From the sequence record NC_048668.1: DNA of 64,000 nt. The stretch is one strand, 5' to 3'. The translations under genes and the position numbers were made by a program. Position 1 is the stretch's first letter, and each line of letters opens with the position of its first letter. This document shows, piece by piece, positions 16,967 through 36,418 of the stretch. The notes under the pieces were generated by a model. That model had not been told where the DNA came from. It did no database searches and worked only from the letters and a program-made list of their open reading frames with translations.

Positions 16967-17055
16967 GAAATACAAGAGGGGCGAAAGCCTCTCTTTATTC
17001 TGTCCTTTATTGGATTGAACTCGTTTCCTATGCACTTACAACGAGGACTATTCCG

Positions 17056-28866: not shown

Positions 28867-30506
28867 ATGCGTCTCAATGAAATGCCTTTTAACATTTTCA
28901 TTATGGACGTTACTCCAGAACTTATTCGTTCCATGCGAGCAACGACCACAACTGAAATTTTCGAAACGGGCACACGTAACTTCAACCGGGACGGTTTGTT
29001 TAGCGTAGAGACTTACGGTACGCTAGGTAGCCCAGAACGTGACGGAAGATTCAGCTATATTAATTTAAACACGTCCATTTTCCACCCTTTGATTTACAAA
29101 CGTTTGGGGACATTGAAACGTCTCTATACCGAAATTATCGAAGGTACTCGTTACGCGATATTTGACGAAGAGAAAAAAGACTTCATCCCAGCCGATGAGA
29201 CGGTTGGTGAAACAGGCTTTGCTTTCTTCGTTAAACATTTCCCTAACCTCGTTATAGAGGAAGGCGATTCTGAGATCCGTAACCTTCGCGTTCGCTTGAT
29301 TAACGAAAACCGTAATAAAGCAATGCTCGAACGCATCTTGGTGATGCCGGCAGGTTTACGTGACCTGATTGTTGGAACCGGGCACAGGAAGAACCTCAGA
29401 AGACGAGATCAACAAATTCTACCGTGCAATGATTTCCATCGCTAACGGTATCTCCGGTTCATCCACCAACCGCAATGACCCAATCATCAACTATTCTCGT
29501 CTGAGTTTACAACGTAACTTCAACGAGATCTTTGAGTACGTCTTTAACATGATTAAAGGCAAGAAGGGGTTTGCGTTGTCCAAGTGGGCATCTCGTAAAA
29601 TCCTGAACGGTACCGCTAACGTAATCACGCCGATTGAACGTAGGTACTGATCGCCTGGGCTCTAACCGTACTCCAGTCATCAACGACGTCCAGCTCGGTC
29701 TGTATCAAGTAATTAAAGCAGTACTTCCTAAGACACGTTACTTCATTCGTAACGGTTGGGTTGGCCAGGTATTCTCCGGTAACACCGAAGATGAAGTTCG
29801 CTTGACCGATCCTAAGACACTGCGCGCAGTATTCGTAAAACCTTCTCCAGAGTCCGTCACTCGTTGGACGACTAAAGAGGGTATCGATGCAGAGATTACC
29901 CGGTACAAGATCCTAGGTTTCCGTCAGCGTCCAATTATGGTCGATGGCTACTACCTTGGTCTGCTTTATGCTGGCCCACAAGGTTGGCGTTTCTTTGCAG
30001 ATATTAATGAGCTGCCTCAAGGGTTCGACAAAAAGTATGTCTACCCTATTAACATGACCTCTCTTTATTATCTGAGCGGTTATCGTGAGTGGCACAAAAT
30101 GGCCGGTATCGTTACCCGTTATCCGGTAACTGGCCCAGGCTCTACTTACATAGGAAACATCTATTGTAAGACAACTCAGAAGACGCAATCTCTCCCTGAG
30201 TTGGACGAAAGCTGGCATCGCCTTGGTCCGGACTTCATTGCCAATGAGTTCCCAGACCAGTCGCAAAAAGCGACTCACTATATGACCCTCAGTCCACACC
30301 CGTCACGTATCGCCCCGCTGGGCGCGGACTATGACGGTGACCGTTGTACTTTCACTGCAGTGTACGGTCGTGATTCTCTGGAAGAGTACGAACTCATCAA
30401 GAGTAAGAAAGAGTGGTACGTATCTGCTCGAGGTAGCCTGGCACTTTCTGCTGACGTAGATAACCTCGACTTGGTACTCCGTAATATCACTGGCGGGCCG
30501 AAATAA
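28867..30506 (+). CDS. Virion RNA polymerase beta-prime-like subunit with the catalytic site (phiKZ gp180-like); joined across +1 frameshifts at about 29374 and 29634
   Basis: GLFSVETYG N-terminal motif and catalytic GADYDGD. Three track ORFs join after removing one G and one T. Confidence 0.9.
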
Positions 30507-30535: not shown

Positions 30536-33500
30536 ATGAGTAACATTACTTATCCCGAACTCTATCAACGATTCGGTATACGTTCTACTTCGGGGTTAAC
30601 TACCCCGAAACTGTTTAATCTGGAGAACTTCAAACTCCCTCGTGGAGCGATCGTTCACTACCTGCCTCAGTCGGTTTCCGATTTAGGCCCGGACGATCAG
30701 TTCTTCCCGATTATCAATGAACGTCTTCGTCCCTACGTAGACCAGGTTACCGATATGACCTCCCATGAAGGAGCTCCTCGACGTCGTGGTGCCTTTAACG
30801 TAGAGAACCTGAAGCGCCAGTGGCTGATTCGTAATCGTCGCTACAGACGCGTTACAGACATCGCCAGAGCGTTAGACGATCGTCAAACTGCAATCGTTGT
30901 TAACTACGCTTTGATCCCGATGCAATGGAAATACCAACCGGTCCCAATGGCCCGCTGGTTCCGTTTCCAAAACCTGATGAAGACGTTCGCTGACCGTGTC
31001 AAATATTTCGGTGAACAGTCTAGCCGTCCCCAGTTCCTCTTCCTTACTCTGCCGGATGTATTACCGTCACGTCAATACCTGAACGTATCGGTTGAGGCCT
31101 ACGATGTAATTCAGGATGCCCGTCAGGCTCAGCAAAGTAATCTGCAGAGCCAACAAGGCGATACTATCGCACGGTACTACGATAACCTCTATCCGGGTAT
31201 CATGACTGGCCAGGGTACTGCGTTCTCTAACGAGGCGTTTGATGCCAGTGCGTTAGGTTGGGGCGATGAACCTGCGTTCGAATCCTTCGATGAATCTTCA
31301 CTCTCAATGGGTGATGATGATCCGATCGTAGCCGTTGAGTCGATGAACCGTATTCGCCTGGGTTACTTCCAAGATGACGCGTCTCTGTTCCTTTCTGATC
31401 TTTGGAAGTGGATGTCAGAGAACCGCGATGAATCCATCCTGGGTTCCATCCCAAGTAATGCATTGAAGAACCTTAACCTGGTTGTCATGCGTAACGGTAA
31501 GTTCAGTCTGCTCTCCTTTGATAAACTCGACCAATGGGTTAAGTCTGAAGAGAACGAACGTGGTATCGGTTTCGGTTCAATGTCTCAGACGATGGATCGC
31601 TACTTGCAGAACATCGTAACGACGACTTCGGTATCCGACAAAATCACCGTTGAAGAAGAAGTTGCAGAAACCGGTGAAACGGAAGTCAGCGACATCAAAG
31701 TCCCTGAACCACAACCAGGCGACCCGGATGTAGATGTCAGCGTTGGTGACAAAGGCGAAAGTGACATCGCACGTCTTCGTCGTAGTGCTCAGCGTGTAAC
31801 TAAAACTCCTCGTGAGATTTTGGCAACTAAGCGCAGTGAAACGCCAATTCAAAATACCGACGTCACGGCGACCACAAGTTTCCAACCCGAGGAAACGACT
31901 GTTGTAGTAGACAAGCCTACTCCGGGTAAATCGGAAGAGGAAGTCATCGATACCAACAACCCGTTGATCAAACCGGTTGAAAAACGTTCCCGTGATCTCC
32001 TGAGTAAAGGACTTATCTCGGGTAACGAGTTTAAACGTCACGTACGCCTCGCTAACAGCTTCAAGAGTATCAAAGCACCATTCGGTGAAGGTACACTGGA
32101 AGACTTCATGAAGATCCCTCACGAGCAACTGTGGGACTTTAAAGCGAAAGAGATTCCGGACATCCCTCACGTGGTCGATAAGACCATGTTGAAGTCTACC
32201 TTACTGAACTACGACCAAGATTACATCAGTAATGTCTTCCAGAAAGATGTTGCAAACATGGTCGTCAGTTTACAGAAGGCAGGTCTGGCAATTACGGATT
32301 ATCGCGTCGAGAAGAAATCCGATGCGTTGAACGACCTCTACGACTACACGATTAAAGTCGTGCCGGTCTATGGTAGTCCTTCTACTATCCGCTTCCAATT
32401 ACCGGCAGTGGATAAGAATGGTAAGTATCGCGTGAATGGCACTAAGTACTTCATGCGTAAACTTAAGTTCGATAAACCAATCCGTAAGATCTCTCCGAGC
32501 ATCGTGGCGTTGTCTACGTACTACGGTAAACTCTTCGTTGAGCGCTCTTCGCGCGCAAGTGAAGATTTGGGCCATGTCCTCGTTGACCTGATCGAAAGGT
32601 CTAGTCAGCTCGACGTCCCTACCGTTACCGATTTGGTACTGGGCAATACATTCACGGAAGATCAGGACGTACCGCGCGAATATTCCGCATTGGCAAAAGA
32701 GTTCGTCTCCTTTGTACTGAATGGAATCCTGTTTACATTCGACTACCCTAACCTGGCGAATAACTACACGGAAGACGTCGTAGTGGCAGCTAAGGCGAAG
32801 GGCTGGGTTCCAGTTGGTCGCAAAGGTAAAGAGTTCATCTTCATGAATAATGAAGGTAAGCTCGTCGACGCTAAAGGTAATGTGTTAGGTTCTATCAACG
32901 AGATGTTGGGATTACCTGATGAGAAACTTCCGGTTGAGCAAGTGATCGTTAAGATCATGGGCGAAGAGATTCCGATGGCTGCGATCCTCATGTATCACAT
33001 GGGCATCACTAAGTTGATGAACACTCTCCCAGTAAAACCAGAGCGTCGTGTTAAAGGCACTCGCGTCGAGCCTGTCCCAGGTACGTTCGAGTTAGTCTTT
33101 GCTGATGAAGTTTGGCGCTTCCCTGTCCACGGTGGTAATAGTAGTCTGATTTGGGCTTCCCTCCAACGTTGGAAGAAATACCTCCGTAGCTTCTCTGTAC
33201 AAGAGCTGGACAATCCGGACACCTTTAACCTGCTGTTCGGTATGGCTAACCTGAGTGCGCGTTACGTGCGTGAGATCGACAACATCAATGCGTTGTTCTT
33301 AGATCCTATCGCTATTGACGTACTGCGCGATATGAAAGAACCGACCGAGTTGAACGACCTGTTCATCAAGGCAGCTTTCTATCTGGTGACCGATAACTAT
33401 CCGAGTGATATTTCCTCAGACGGTTCTCTGTTCCGTGGTTACGAACGTATGCCTGGCGAAGTCTACCGTACTTTGTCCAACGCGTATCGTTCTTACGCCA

Positions 33501-33895
33501 GTCAGCCTGTTAGTTCCCGTGCAACTATCGATATCCCGCCGTTTGAAGTATTGGCGGCAATCCAACGTGACCCATCCGTCGCCATCGTTGAGGATTCTAA
33601 CCCAATCCACAACCTTAAAGAGAAAGAGAACGTAACTTACTCTGGTACAGGCGGTCGGTCTAAACGTGCAATGGTTCGTCGTACTCGTGCGTTCCATAAA
33701 TCAGATATCGGTATTCGTGCAGAGGCATCGGTGGATAACGGTGACGTAGGGATTAACACATTCCTTACTGCTAACCCTAACCTGACCTCGCTTCGTGGTA
33801 CAGCAGTTCCAACTGTTGATCCGGATCCGAAGAACGGTGTCGGTAACCTTCTGAGTACGTCAGCGCTCGTAGCTCCATTTGCGACTTACGATGAT
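30536..33895 (+). CDS. Virion RNA polymerase beta-like subunit (phiKZ gp178-like), exon 1
   Basis: GGRS...R, EASVDNGDVG and PFATYDD motifs. Ends at the in-frame TAA that begins the intron. Track start is GTG at 30524. Confidence 0.9.
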
Positions 33896-33919
33896 TAATG
33901 TAATTGAACTGTAATGAAT

Positions 33920-33960
33920 TTAACACTCCTTAATATGAGAAGTACTTAAGGAGCGGTTAA
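33920..33960 (+). promoter_or_regulatory. RBS-sequestering hairpin with a TATG late-promoter core in its loop
   Basis: CTCCTTAA 33926-33933 pairs with TTAAGGAG 33946-33953, which contains the SD. TATG lies at 33934-33937. Confidence 0.75.
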
Positions 33961-33961
33961 G

Positions 33962-34948
33962 ATGCCGATAGAATCAATTCAGTTTCCTGGATTTTACGAG
34001 ATACCCGGATTCGACCGGTACGTGATTTCCAAAGAGGGTAGAGTAGTCAATAAATTAACTGGTACCGAACTGAACGGTAGCGTGAACGAAGCCGGATACC
34101 TCCATTTTCGACTTACACGCGCTGCTCAGGACGCGTTAACGATAGGTAGACATCGATTGATGGGTATTGTCTTTAAAGACCCAGGGATCCCTGTAGACGA
34201 TTTGGTGATTAATCACCTTAACGGCATAAAGGGAGATGACTTCCTAGATAACCTGGAATGGGAAACCTACCAAGGCAACGCTGAACATGCCGGTGAAATG
34301 GGGTTGACTAGTAAATGTTTACCAATCTCTGTGCGAGACTATGAAACGGGAGAAGTTAGAAATTACCCGAGCTTTATAGCCTACGCCAGAGAGTCTGGGA
34401 TGACTAAGGATGCAGTTAGTCGTAGAGTGGCAATTGGGGAGAGACGTTTGTTCCCTGAATTGAAACAATACCGACTAGCATCTGTAACAACCCCTTGGTA
34501 CGCTATCCGAAATAAGGAAGCTGCTCTTAATGAGAACGGTACGGAAAAGAGCGTTGACGTGAGAGAGCTGATCAGCGGAAAGGTAACAACCTTCCCAAAA
34601 GCATCATTGGTCGCAATCCACTTTAAAGTTTCGCCCGCCACTGTTACTCTCTGGTTGAAACAAGAAAACCAACCAGTCTTACCAGGTATGATTCAGATAA
34701 AATTCTCTGATGATGAAACTCCCTGGAGAGAAGTAATTGATCCGTGGAAATCCTTAGAGGAATACACGAAGAATCGCGTCATAGTCGTCACCAATGTCGG
34801 AACCGGCGAAAAGGTATTTTATCCATCCGGCAAAGATTGCGCAACCAAACGAAACATTAAACCAACCACGCTACACATGCGGTTGAAATCCCCTAAAGGG
34901 AAAGTGTTCTCCGATGGCTGTCGATACGACTATTATTCAGAAATTTAA
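33962..34948 (+). CDS. Intron-encoded NUMOD4-HNH homing endonuclease with C-terminal NUMOD1-like repeats
   Basis: IPGFDRYVISKEGRV, GYL, HRL, INHLNGIKGDDFLDNLEW, then three repeats of the type V.D..TGE...(Y/F)PS. Confidence 0.92.
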   Translation: MPIESIQFPGFYEIPGFDRYVISKEGRVVNKLTGTELNGSVNEAGYLHFRLTRAAQDALTIGRHRLMGIVFKDPGIPVDDLVINHLNGIKGDDFLDNLEWETYQGNAEHAGEMGLTSKCLPISVRDYETGEVRNYPSFIAYARESGMTKDAVSRRVAIGERRLFPELKQYRLASVTTPWYAIRNKEAALNENGTEKSVDVRELISGKVTTFPKASLVAIHFKVSPATVTLWLKQENQPVLPGMIQIKFSDDETPWREVIDPWKSLEEYTKNRVIVVTNVGTGEKVFYPSGKDCATKRNIKPTTLHMRLKSPKGKVFSDGCRYDYYSEI

Positions 34949-35266
34949 TTACCAGGTCACTTCTGAGAGTAATCTCAGTCGATAACTCCTTTAATTGCTG
35001 GAACCCCCTTAGAGCTTAATCAACTACAACGTAGATCGAAAGATCAAGCGTGAATGTTTGAAAATGATTAAGATTGGGCAATCAGCAGCGAAGCTCCTGT
35101 AAAATGGAGAACGTTCAACGACTATCGCCGTCGGGCGAGTAGGGTTCAAGTGAACTCGAAACGGGGAGCCCCTTTAATTAGGGTGAAGATATAGTCTCGA
35201 CATCTGAGGAAAGCTCAGAGCTGCAAAGGCAGGCTTAGGAGTAACGAACCTAAGTGAAGATTTTCG

Positions 35267-36418
35267 CCAAAACGAGTAAGTTTCATCTCTATTCAGCAAT
35301 CCCACGTTATCGCTTCTAGTGACGCAATGGTTTCTCCTATCCGTACTGGGTACGAGCAAGTCATGGCTCACCGTGTTGACGATACATTCGCTACCGCGGC
35401 TAAAGGCCCAGGGGTGGTGACAGAGAAAGGCCCTAACTACATGGTCGTAAAATACGACGATGAGAAATTAGGTGAGGAGCGTATCCAATTAGGTCGTCGC
35501 TTCGGTGTGGTAACTGGTCACGTTGTTCCACACGCCGTAGTATCTGAACTGGAAGTGGGTAAGCGAGTAGTAGAAGGTGAGATCGTAAGTTACCATCCTG
35601 GGTTCTTCCAGCGCGACTGGCGTGACCCGACTCAGGTGCTGTGGAAGTCAGGTACTCTGGCCAACATCGCACTGATGGAAAACAACTCGACCTTTGAGGA
35701 TGCGAGTTTGATCTCCGAATCACTCTCTAAACGTCTGCACACGCCGACTAGCCATACGCGTACTATCTTGGTTAACTTTAACCAGGGTATTCGTAATCTG
35801 GTAGCGGTTGGCGAACATGTAGATAATGAAACGGTTCTCGGCTACATTGAGGATGAGGTTTCTTCTGCGAGTGATTTGTTCGACGAGTCCACTTTGGAAG
35901 CATTGAAACGTTTGGGTTCTCCAGCTCCGCGTGCTAAGTATGTAGGAGATATCGAGAAAATCGAGGTAATCTATTTCGGTGAGAAGGAAGACATGTCTCC
36001 TTCATTACGGAAAATTGCGGATTACTACGATAACCAACGCGCCAAGCTTTCTAAGGCTTTGGGTGGTACAGAAGCGAAGACTGGGCAGATTTTCACGCCT
36101 ACGCGATTGGACGGTCTCTCTATTGAGATTGATATGATGGCGATTCGTATCTACATTACCCATGACCGCTCTATGGGTGACGGGGACAAGATCGTGGTGG
36201 GTAACCAGAAAAAGTCCGTGGTGTCTGGAGTGTTCACTGGTAAGTGCCGTACTGTCGGCCCAGTGATTCCTGGCGATAAACCATGGGACGTAGATCTCCA
36301 GTTCTCGTACAAGTCTGTAAACGCACGTATCGTAAACTCCGCGATGATGTCGGGGATGGTTAACATCCTTCTCCAGCACATTGCCACTGCGATGCTGAAC
36401 GCTTACAACGAAGAGTAG
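35267..36418 (+). CDS. Virion RNA polymerase beta-like subunit, exon 2
   Basis: In frame with track ORF 35327-36418 (60 nt upstream). PKRVSFISIQQSH, TFEDAS and GDGDKIVVGNQKKSV beta motifs. Confidence 0.9.
   Translation, partial: PKRVSFISIQQSHVIASSDAMVSPIRTGYEQVMAHRVDDTFATAAKGPGVVTEKGPNYMVVKYDDEKLGEERIQLGRRFGVVTGHVVPHAVVSELEVGKRVVEGEIVSYHPGFFQRDWRDPTQVLWKSGTLANIALMENNSTFEDASLISESLSKRLHTPTSHTRTILVNFNQGIRNLVAVGEHVDNETVLGYIEDEVSSASDLFDESTLEALKRLGSPAPRAKYVGDIEKIEVIYFGEKEDMSPSLRKIADYYDNQRAKLSKALGGTEAKTGQIFTPTRLDGLSIEIDMMAIRIYITHDRSMGDGDKIVVGNQKKSVVSGVFTGKCRTVGPVIPGDKPWDVDLQFSYKSVNARIVNSAMMSGMVNILLQHIATAMLNAYNEE

Follow-up and report, generated by a model that had tools for sequence, protein, structure and literature searches.

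A conserved hairpin over the ribosome-binding site of intron-encoded endonuclease genes in nucleus-forming phages, with a candidate bypass promoter in its loop

The homing endonuclease gene of Serratia phage vB_SmaM_2050HW, a member of the genus Moabitevirus, now in the Chimalliviridae (nucleus-forming jumbo phages), lies in a group I intron of the virion RNA polymerase beta-subunit gene, and its Shine-Dalgarno (SD) sequence is enclosed in a hairpin. The locus was analyzed in a stretch of 64,000 nucleotides from record NC_048668.1, referred to here as the window, which matched the 2050HW record at 100% identity, base 32900 of the window corresponding to base 94900 of the record. Comparison of the leaders of related genes indicates that an SD-occluding hairpin is a conserved, covarying trait of this endonuclease gene family. 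The loop also carries a TATG, a candidate promoter from which a shorter transcript might escape the hairpin. The features on which the argument turns are as follows.

33920-33960, + strand: hairpin sequestering the ribosome-binding site (RBS), with outer stem 33920-24/33956-60, anti-SD arm 33926-33933, loop 33934-33945 and SD arm 33946-33953
33934-33937, + strand: TATG, by motif match a candidate phiKZ-type initiator for the phage non-virion RNA polymerase (nvRNAP), with a putative +1 at G33937, 25 nt before the ATG
33962-34948, + strand: HNH/NUMOD4 homing endonuclease gene of 328 amino acids, identified with Pfam, tblastn and BLASTP

The two arms could be read directly from the sequence, the anti-SD arm as CTCCTTAA (33926-33933) and the SD arm as TTAAGGAG (33946-33953). 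Outside them lie TTAAC (33920-33924) followed by A33925 on the 5' side, and CG (33954-55) followed by GTTAA (33956-33960) on the 3' side. The 12-nt loop between them, TATGAGAAGTAC (33934-45), opens with the TATG, and the start codon of the endonuclease, ATG, is at 33962-33964, with 8 nt between the end of the SD and the start codon. A first-pass annotation made from the sequence alone had proposed this hairpin, its extension by TTAAC/GTTAA and the TATG in its loop. The coordinates and the SD pairing agreed with the sequence base for base, the TATG was found at 33934-33937, and the hairpin was both the minimum free energy (MFE) fold and the centroid fold, at -15.3 kcal/mol with a z score of -2.35 (-2.5 in a separate run). 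Three of 200 dinucleotide shuffles folded as well as the native hairpin. When the 1.4-kb pre-mRNA was folded, the eight SD/anti-SD pairs had probabilities of 0.93-1.0, while the outer TTAAC/GTTAA stem was present but weaker, with pair probabilities of only 0.41-0.48.

Among the 61 annotated gene starts in the window, the endonuclease RBS ranked third in the energy required to open positions -18 to +4, and shared first place in SD pairing probability (0.93). When the 39 nt upstream were shuffled, the occlusion of the RBS in 2050HW had a p value of 0.013. Taken singly, then, the 2050HW hairpin is notable within the window, only modestly unusual, and not unique. Scans of positions 33700-35400 found no terminator, the hairpin having no T-run, and no sigma-70 promoter at the hairpin, the sole match to such a promoter being on the minus strand (34960-34932); the hairpin was therefore rejected as a terminator or sigma-70 promoter.

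The single-locus statistics are only modest, and the decisive evidence that the hairpin would be functional is the comparative test. The comparative set consisted of 16 lineages of the endonuclease family, among them Serratia, Klebsiella, Vibrio and Pseudomonas phages in GenBank and IMG/VR contigs with 27-51% protein identity. In 10 of the 16 the RBS was harder to open than with shuffled upstream sequence (p<0.05 each), a level reached by 10% of ordinary window genes in the same test, and the Fisher combined p for all 16 was 3e-9, a value which, like the other comparative P values given here, overstates independence because the lineages share ancestry. The arms vary from lineage to lineage yet stay complementary: CUCCUUAA/UUAAGGAG in 2050HW and, elsewhere, CUCCUAU/AUAGGAG, CUCCAA/UUGGAG, UCCUGAGU/ACUCAGGA and GUUAUCCUAU/AUAGGAUAAC. 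RBS-occluding hairpins were also found in front of PhiPA3 gp210, where the SD is occluded by the CUCCAA/UUGGAG pair, and phiKZ gp179, where the hairpin is a perfect 10 bp. It is the complementarity to the SD that is kept, and in every lineage its position follows that of the start codon. The occlusion of the SD that the first-pass annotation had claimed is thus supported by folding and by recurrence across the 16 lineages, and the hairpin very probably represses translation of the endonuclease in vivo.

Some further features of the leader were observed. Blocks of conserved sequence, TTGAAT and (A)A.TTAACAC (window 33905-33926), precede the hairpin and are found in the same place in loci L012-L020; TTGAAT-N20-TATNNT resembles a sigma-70 promoter with an over-long spacer, and L016 has TTGAAT-17-TATAAT. 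The 5' strand of ribozyme helix P3, ACUCCUUUAAU (34976-34986), is nearly identical to the anti-SD arm, ACUCCUUAAU (33924-33934), so that the SD arm, once released, could pair wrongly with the ribozyme core, which the hairpin may also serve to shield.

The gene behind the hairpin encodes a protein that matched Pfam NUMOD4 (26.2 bits, cutoff 23.4) and, below the cutoff of 24.8, HNH_3 (20.4 bits). It is a homolog of PhiPA3 gp210, with 42.9% identity over 99% of the query by tblastn and 43% identity over 324 residues by BLASTP (E=1e-90), and its predicted catalytic residue, His85, aligned with the catalytic His82 of gp210. In gp210, the H82R substitution abolishes activity (PMC11620839), and the protein nicks the phiKZ virion-polymerase gene and helps PhiPA3 in co-infection (Birkholz et al. 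2024, PMC11620839). The intron that contains the endonuclease open reading frame (ORF) was delimited as follows.

30536-33895, + strand: exon 1 of the virion RNA polymerase beta-subunit gene, an annotated coding sequence (CDS) ending TAC GAT GAT (Tyr-Asp-Asp)
33896-35266, + strand: group I intron of 1371 nt, with an in-frame UAA (33896-33898) at its start and G35266 at its end
33892-33896, + strand: P1 5' strand, UGAU/U, pairing with the guide GGUCA at 34955-34959
33900-33917, + strand: P1-extension 5' strand, from duplex prediction, pairing with 34932-34952
34932-34959, + strand: P1-extension 3' strand and guide, including the ORF stop TAA at 34946-34948
34937-35220, + strand: ribozyme core, P2 to P9 (Rfam RF00028), overlapping the last four codons of the ORF
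35267-36418, + strand: exon 2 of the beta-subunit gene, starting CCA AAA CGA GTA AGT; GenBank has only 35327-36418, from an internal ATG

The GenBank annotation of this locus gives two 'beta subunit' CDS and one endonuclease, with the intron unannotated. Alignment with the uninterrupted gene of Moabite, one of three intronless alleles along with those of Yaphecito and BUCT660, set the junction after T33895. Joining the exons there restored the reading frame and gave TYDD/PKRVSF, identical to Moabite, and the intron is inserted after the same Asp-Asp codons as that of PhiPA3. The match to RF00028 at 34937-35220 scored 82.6 bits (gathering score 50) and spanned the full model (1-253); this group I intron core was the only family that Rfam matched, and none was matched by the hairpin. 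A ribozyme core directly followed the ORF in 18 of the 18 related loci scanned (17 homolog loci and Kodama), with scores of 92 bits after phiKZ gp179 and 68 bits after PhiPA3 gp210. At the gathering threshold Rfam missed the introns of Kodama and Totoro, and permissive mode gave Kodama 46 bits.

At the 5' splice site U33895 pairs with G34956 in P1, and G35266 precedes exon 2. Kodama has a compensatory change, pairing exon CGAU with guide GUCG, where 2050HW pairs UGAU with GUCA. For the P1 extension, strands taken from the same lineage paired with a mean of -11.6 kcal/mol versus -6.7 for strands taken across lineages (Mann-Whitney p=2e-5), and equivalent helices of unrelated sequence were found in ten lineages. 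The proposed P1 and P1 extension come from covariation only; the thermodynamic fold of the full pre-mRNA did not recover them (probability 0.05-0.08, with 0.08 for the extension). Because the 5' bases of the intron pair with a strand 3' of the ORF, both the ORF and its leader hairpin would sit in the P1 loop, and the stop codon of the ORF (34946-48) falls inside the covarying 3' strand of the P1 extension.

By itself, a 4-mer such as TATG means little in a loop of 12 nt, and it is the recurrence of the motif that gives it weight. In phiKZ the nvRNAP late promoter is T(-3)ATG(+1), all four bases of which are required, and the TATG is bound by the beta-like subunit of the nvRNAP; the core from about -3 to +1 given in the first-pass annotation agrees with this literature, with the G as +1. 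In 9 of the 16 lineages, compared with 2.4 expected (P about 1e-4), a TATG occupied the 5' part of the loop, at positions between -40 and -16. A MAFFT alignment of 14 leaders placed T-N-T-G at the loop's 5' edge in 12; the T, T and G were kept in 12-14 of the 14 and the remaining loop bases varied. An RNA starting at G33937 would lack the whole 5' arm, and its predicted SD pairing fell from 0.81 to 0.42 as its MFE changed from -18.2 to -5.0 kcal/mol.

Similar motifs are found upstream of other genes of 2050HW. Where the spacer is at least 40 nt, a sense TATG was located 12-80 nt upstream of 19 of 44 genes, compared with 8 antisense, and shuffles gave 11.4 +/- 2.9 genes (P=0.009). CTATG occurred upstream 7 times in sense and 0 times in antisense orientation, and CTATG, TATGA and TATGT were the top de novo upstream 5-mers, making (C)TATG(A/T) the leading upstream motif. 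The longer TCCTATG is found almost exclusively some 33 nt ahead of gene starts, in many cases behind a terminator-like hairpin, and five of its six occurrences are on the + strand just before a gene start. The 25-nt leader that would run from G33937 is within the 24-49 nt typical of 2050HW TATG sites. The polymerase operon starts at 28867, and the 60 nt before it contain no TATG, which makes it probable that the gene interrupted by the intron is served by another promoter class; the virion-polymerase genes of phiKZ are middle genes. T-rich TCCTATG(A) sites were noted at 17026, 39570, 47378, 53982 and 58101 (+ strand), about 24-36 nt before gene starts and often just 3' of a GC-rich hairpin and T-run, and TCCTATG(A) may be the late-promoter consensus of Moabitevirus. 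Simple enrichment of the TATG 4-mer was rejected; the only signals that hold up are the longer (C)TATG(A/T) and the asymmetry between sense and antisense.

Several results weigh against a promoter in the loop, in addition to the shared descent of the 16 lineages. The bare TATG 4-mer was not enriched over composition in 2050HW (33 observed, about 33 expected), and a gene-agnostic scan for it gave z=0.9. The TATG of the endonuclease does not have the CC found at -5/-4 in the local consensus, and its flanks score no higher than the 90th percentile of coding TATGs, a middling value. Five lineages have TGTG, TTTG or AATG, though phiKZ needs all four bases. No TATG is present in the gp210 hairpin of PhiPA3 or in the gp179 hairpin of phiKZ, phiKZ being where TATG specificity was demonstrated and PhiPA3 its relative among Pseudomonas phages. 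A 2025 preprint places phiKZ gp179 on a polycistronic transcript without internal start sites, and in phiKZ the TATG is required but does not suffice for a promoter. In Klebsiella phage phiKp_32, which does have a loop TATG, no enrichment of TATG upstream of genes was found in the 50 kb examined, where the top upstream motif was TATTAT. As for the temporal switch, the host beta gene would, by analogy with phiKZ, be a middle gene rather than an early one. The bypass suggested by the first-pass annotation is partly supported: a transcript from G33937 would lose the 5' arm and its SD is predicted to open, whereas the absence of TATG in PhiPA3 and phiKZ and the non-consensus flanks count against it. 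That the loop TATG acts as a bypass promoter is a reasonable hypothesis, to be held tentatively.

The full explanation that we favor, with some hesitation and at a little less than even confidence, is a translational repressor hairpin that is bypassed by a second transcript from the loop TATG. The pre-mRNA and the excised intron would both hold the two arms, CUCCUUAA would pair with the SD UUAAGGAG, and ribosomes would rarely start. Any ribosome that translated the ORF would open the helix by which the 5' splice site is defined, because the last codons and the stop of the ORF form the 3' strand of the P1 extension beside the guide, and unchecked translation would also yield nuclease at the wrong time or dose. 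Release would most likely come through a second, shorter transcript, for which the TATG at the loop edge would serve the non-virion RNA polymerase as a phiKZ-type initiator promoter. In an RNA from G33937 the anti-SD arm would be gone and the RBS free, with the 5' end 25 nt from the start codon. Early or late timing of the nuclease has less support than repression in this analysis. The phage nucleus, which separates transcription and splicing from ribosomes, weakens the rationale that the hairpin protects splicing; as transcription is walled off from ribosomes, the dosage or timing of the nuclease would be the likelier selective reason.

The alternatives differ in what they make of the loop. 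If the hairpin were simply an attenuator, translation would always be low, protein would come from breathing of the hairpin on the pre-mRNA or excised intron, and no internal promoter would be needed. This is rather unlikely overall, and it draws on some of the same results that count against a promoter: the hairpin is kept where the TATG is not (PhiPA3 gp210, phiKZ gp179 and loci L012, L016, L018 and L019), gp179 is reported on a polycistronic transcript without internal starts, and TATG is insufficient for a promoter, with non-consensus flanks in 2050HW. An attenuator leaves unexplained, however, why the T, T and G are kept amid varying loop bases and why TATG recurs in more lineages than expected, and an 8-bp SD helix with the pair probabilities found here would permit very little translation. 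The loop bases have another possible reading, as the start codon of a leader mini-ORF, in which translation of 2-10 codons from a loop NUG would melt the SD arm, with coupling or re-initiation at 33962. In 2050HW this mini-ORF would be the following.

33935-33949, + strand: four-codon mini-ORF, AUG AGA AGU ACU UAA, starting in the loop, with its UAA (33947-49) inside the SD arm

At the second base of the motif A, G and T occur but C does not, which makes every loop variant a bacterial start codon (AUG, GUG or UUG); C-ZP2022 retains the ATG when the first T is lost; and the 2050HW stop is inside the SD arm. In 11 of 13 lineages the mini-ORF stops no later than the main start, but 73% of control frames also stop before the main start, and the coupling was rejected on this similarity, the pattern being non-specific. 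The loop NUG, moreover, has no SD, being preceded by the pyrimidine-rich anti-SD, PhiPA3 has no NUG at the aligned position, and the conserved T preceding the NUG (13 of 14) is unexplained, which makes the mini-ORF improbable. An equally small likelihood is given to a structural or processing element, such as a peripheral ribozyme domain, a site of RNase III/E entry at which the 5' arm is cleaved off, or an autorepressor site. The position of the hairpin atop the P1 extension, in the P1 loop, and the sequence-conserved TTGAAT and TTAACAC blocks upstream of it would fit such an element, as would the loop of Totoro and Kodama, which has a copy of the end of exon 1, GTATGACGAT, like the I-TevI operator. 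The exon mimic is not general (combined p=0.12; 2050HW alone p=0.10), no terminator match, T-run or Rfam family other than the intron core was found, and the conserved feature is complementarity to the SD, which follows the start codon in every lineage.

Kodama (L003, 2496-4180) and Totoro (L004) have a related intron at the same site with a longer HNH ORF (413 amino acids, 29% identical); this ORF, too, has a hairpin near its start, and a TATG at -27. The GTATGACGAT in their loop reproduces exactly the end of exon 1 in Totoro and Moabite (4 of 2000 shuffles) and resembles an I-TevI operator, or a second P1 substrate. As a candidate in its own right, a homing-site mimic, that is an I-TevI-type operator or alternative P1 substrate, was rejected, since it was significant only in Totoro/Kodama (p=0.001), with the combined p of 0.12 given above.

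The control logic proposed here is already known from other phages. In T4 I-TevI, I-TevII, I-TevIII and segB and in Aeh1 mobE, an RBS hairpin is bypassed by an internal late or middle promoter, in agreement with the I-TevI precedent cited in the first-pass annotation, and removal of the I-TevI hairpin leads to loss of splicing. The 2050HW gene resembles I-TevI of the td intron in that a homing endonuclease gene lies within a phage gene, a hairpin hides the SD on read-through RNA, a promoter motif (a candidate in 2050HW) lies in the hairpin region from which a short transcript would lack the 5' arm, and the ORF's 3' end enters the ribozyme structure, so that translation would disturb splicing. 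It differs in that the 2050HW candidate is a 4-bp initiator for a sigma-less multisubunit phage polymerase, whereas T4 uses a gp55 late promoter and the host polymerase; in that the loop holding the ORF is that of P1 and not P6; in that transcription and translation are separated by the protein nucleus in this type of phage; and in that no operator-type autorepression site was found in 2050HW (homing-site resemblance p=0.10).

PhiPA3 gp210 is the closer comparison. The proteins are 43% identical over their full length with the catalytic His conserved, the introns follow the same two Asp codons of the virion RNA polymerase beta gene, and in both a ribozyme core follows the ORF and a hairpin hides the SD. 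The PhiPA3 hairpin has no TATG, and the nicking and competition phenotype are PhiPA3 results only. Neither a hairpin nor a promoter was mentioned in the PhiPA3 paper (0 occurrences; PMC11620839) or in a 2025 review. The 2050HW site resembles phiKZ late promoters of the P119L type in its coding-strand TATG core, the short 5' untranslated region that it would give and its AT-rich context; it differs in that the 2050HW consensus seems to add a T at -6 and CC at -5/-4, of which the endonuclease site lacks the CC. The phiKZ promoters need downstream determinants in addition. What is new is the occurrence of this control throughout the intron-endonuclease family of the Chimalliviridae, together with the location of the ORF in the P1 loop and the candidate initiator-type promoter for a phage multisubunit polymerase. 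The circuit would be a T4-type one in a new phage family, with a putative bypass arm.

Other observations were made on the intron and its surroundings. Around the intron site (33881-33895 and 35267-35281) there were 10 synonymous differences from Moabite (L001) in 27 nt (ACT TAC GAT GAT / CCA AAA CGA GTA AGT versus Moabite ACG TAT GAC GAT / CCG AAG CGT GTG TCG), where the flanking DNA is about 99% identical; this cluster looks like target-site immunity or a co-conversion tract. In phiKp_32 (L009, 1110-1200) the frame runs on through D-D-P-K-R before a stop, so its intron seems to lie about 9 nt downstream of the Asp-Asp site of 2050HW and PhiPA3. In phiKZ, gp179 (L010, 838-2175) lies between gp180 and gp178 with a strong group I core after it, and published long-read data gave no sign of splicing. 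A stretch of the core (34984-35125) shows 87.6% identity across 112 nt with Aeromonas phage PS1, in an unannotated region beside an HNH gene, and 94% identity across 49 nt with Staphylococcus Kayvirus genomes; by these matches, closely similar group I core segments occur in unrelated phage families. Upstream of the intron-containing gene, three overlapping CDS labelled 'RNA polymerase beta subunit' at 28867-30506 (28867-29445, 29429-29650 and 29634-30506) correspond to a single 1638-nt gene in Moabite, and the split represents either frameshifts or sequence errors in 2050HW.

To our knowledge, no intron endonuclease other than the PhiPA3 homolog has been shown to benefit its phage in competition, and we know of nothing published on the expression of such genes in nucleus-forming phages. 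A family-wide RBS hairpin, together with an ORF in the P1 loop and a stop codon inside the splice-site helix, provides a concrete and testable model for this control. If the loop TATG is inactive, the hairpin alone would still account for sparing production of the nuclease. If it is active, the T4 circuit would have been re-invented independently with other transcription machinery, and the site would be a compact natural reporter of non-virion polymerase specificity beyond the Pseudomonas phages. It is conceivable, with slightly less confidence than for the 2050HW site itself, that the virion-polymerase intron endonucleases of the Chimalliviridae share one module, consisting of an ORF in the P1 loop, an SD-locking hairpin and a 4-bp nvRNAP initiator in the loop. 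In that case a switch of polymerase or promoter class, and not a sigma factor, would time a nuclease that in PhiPA3 acts against co-infecting phages, and the lineages with TGTG or TTTG would point to altered polymerase specificity.

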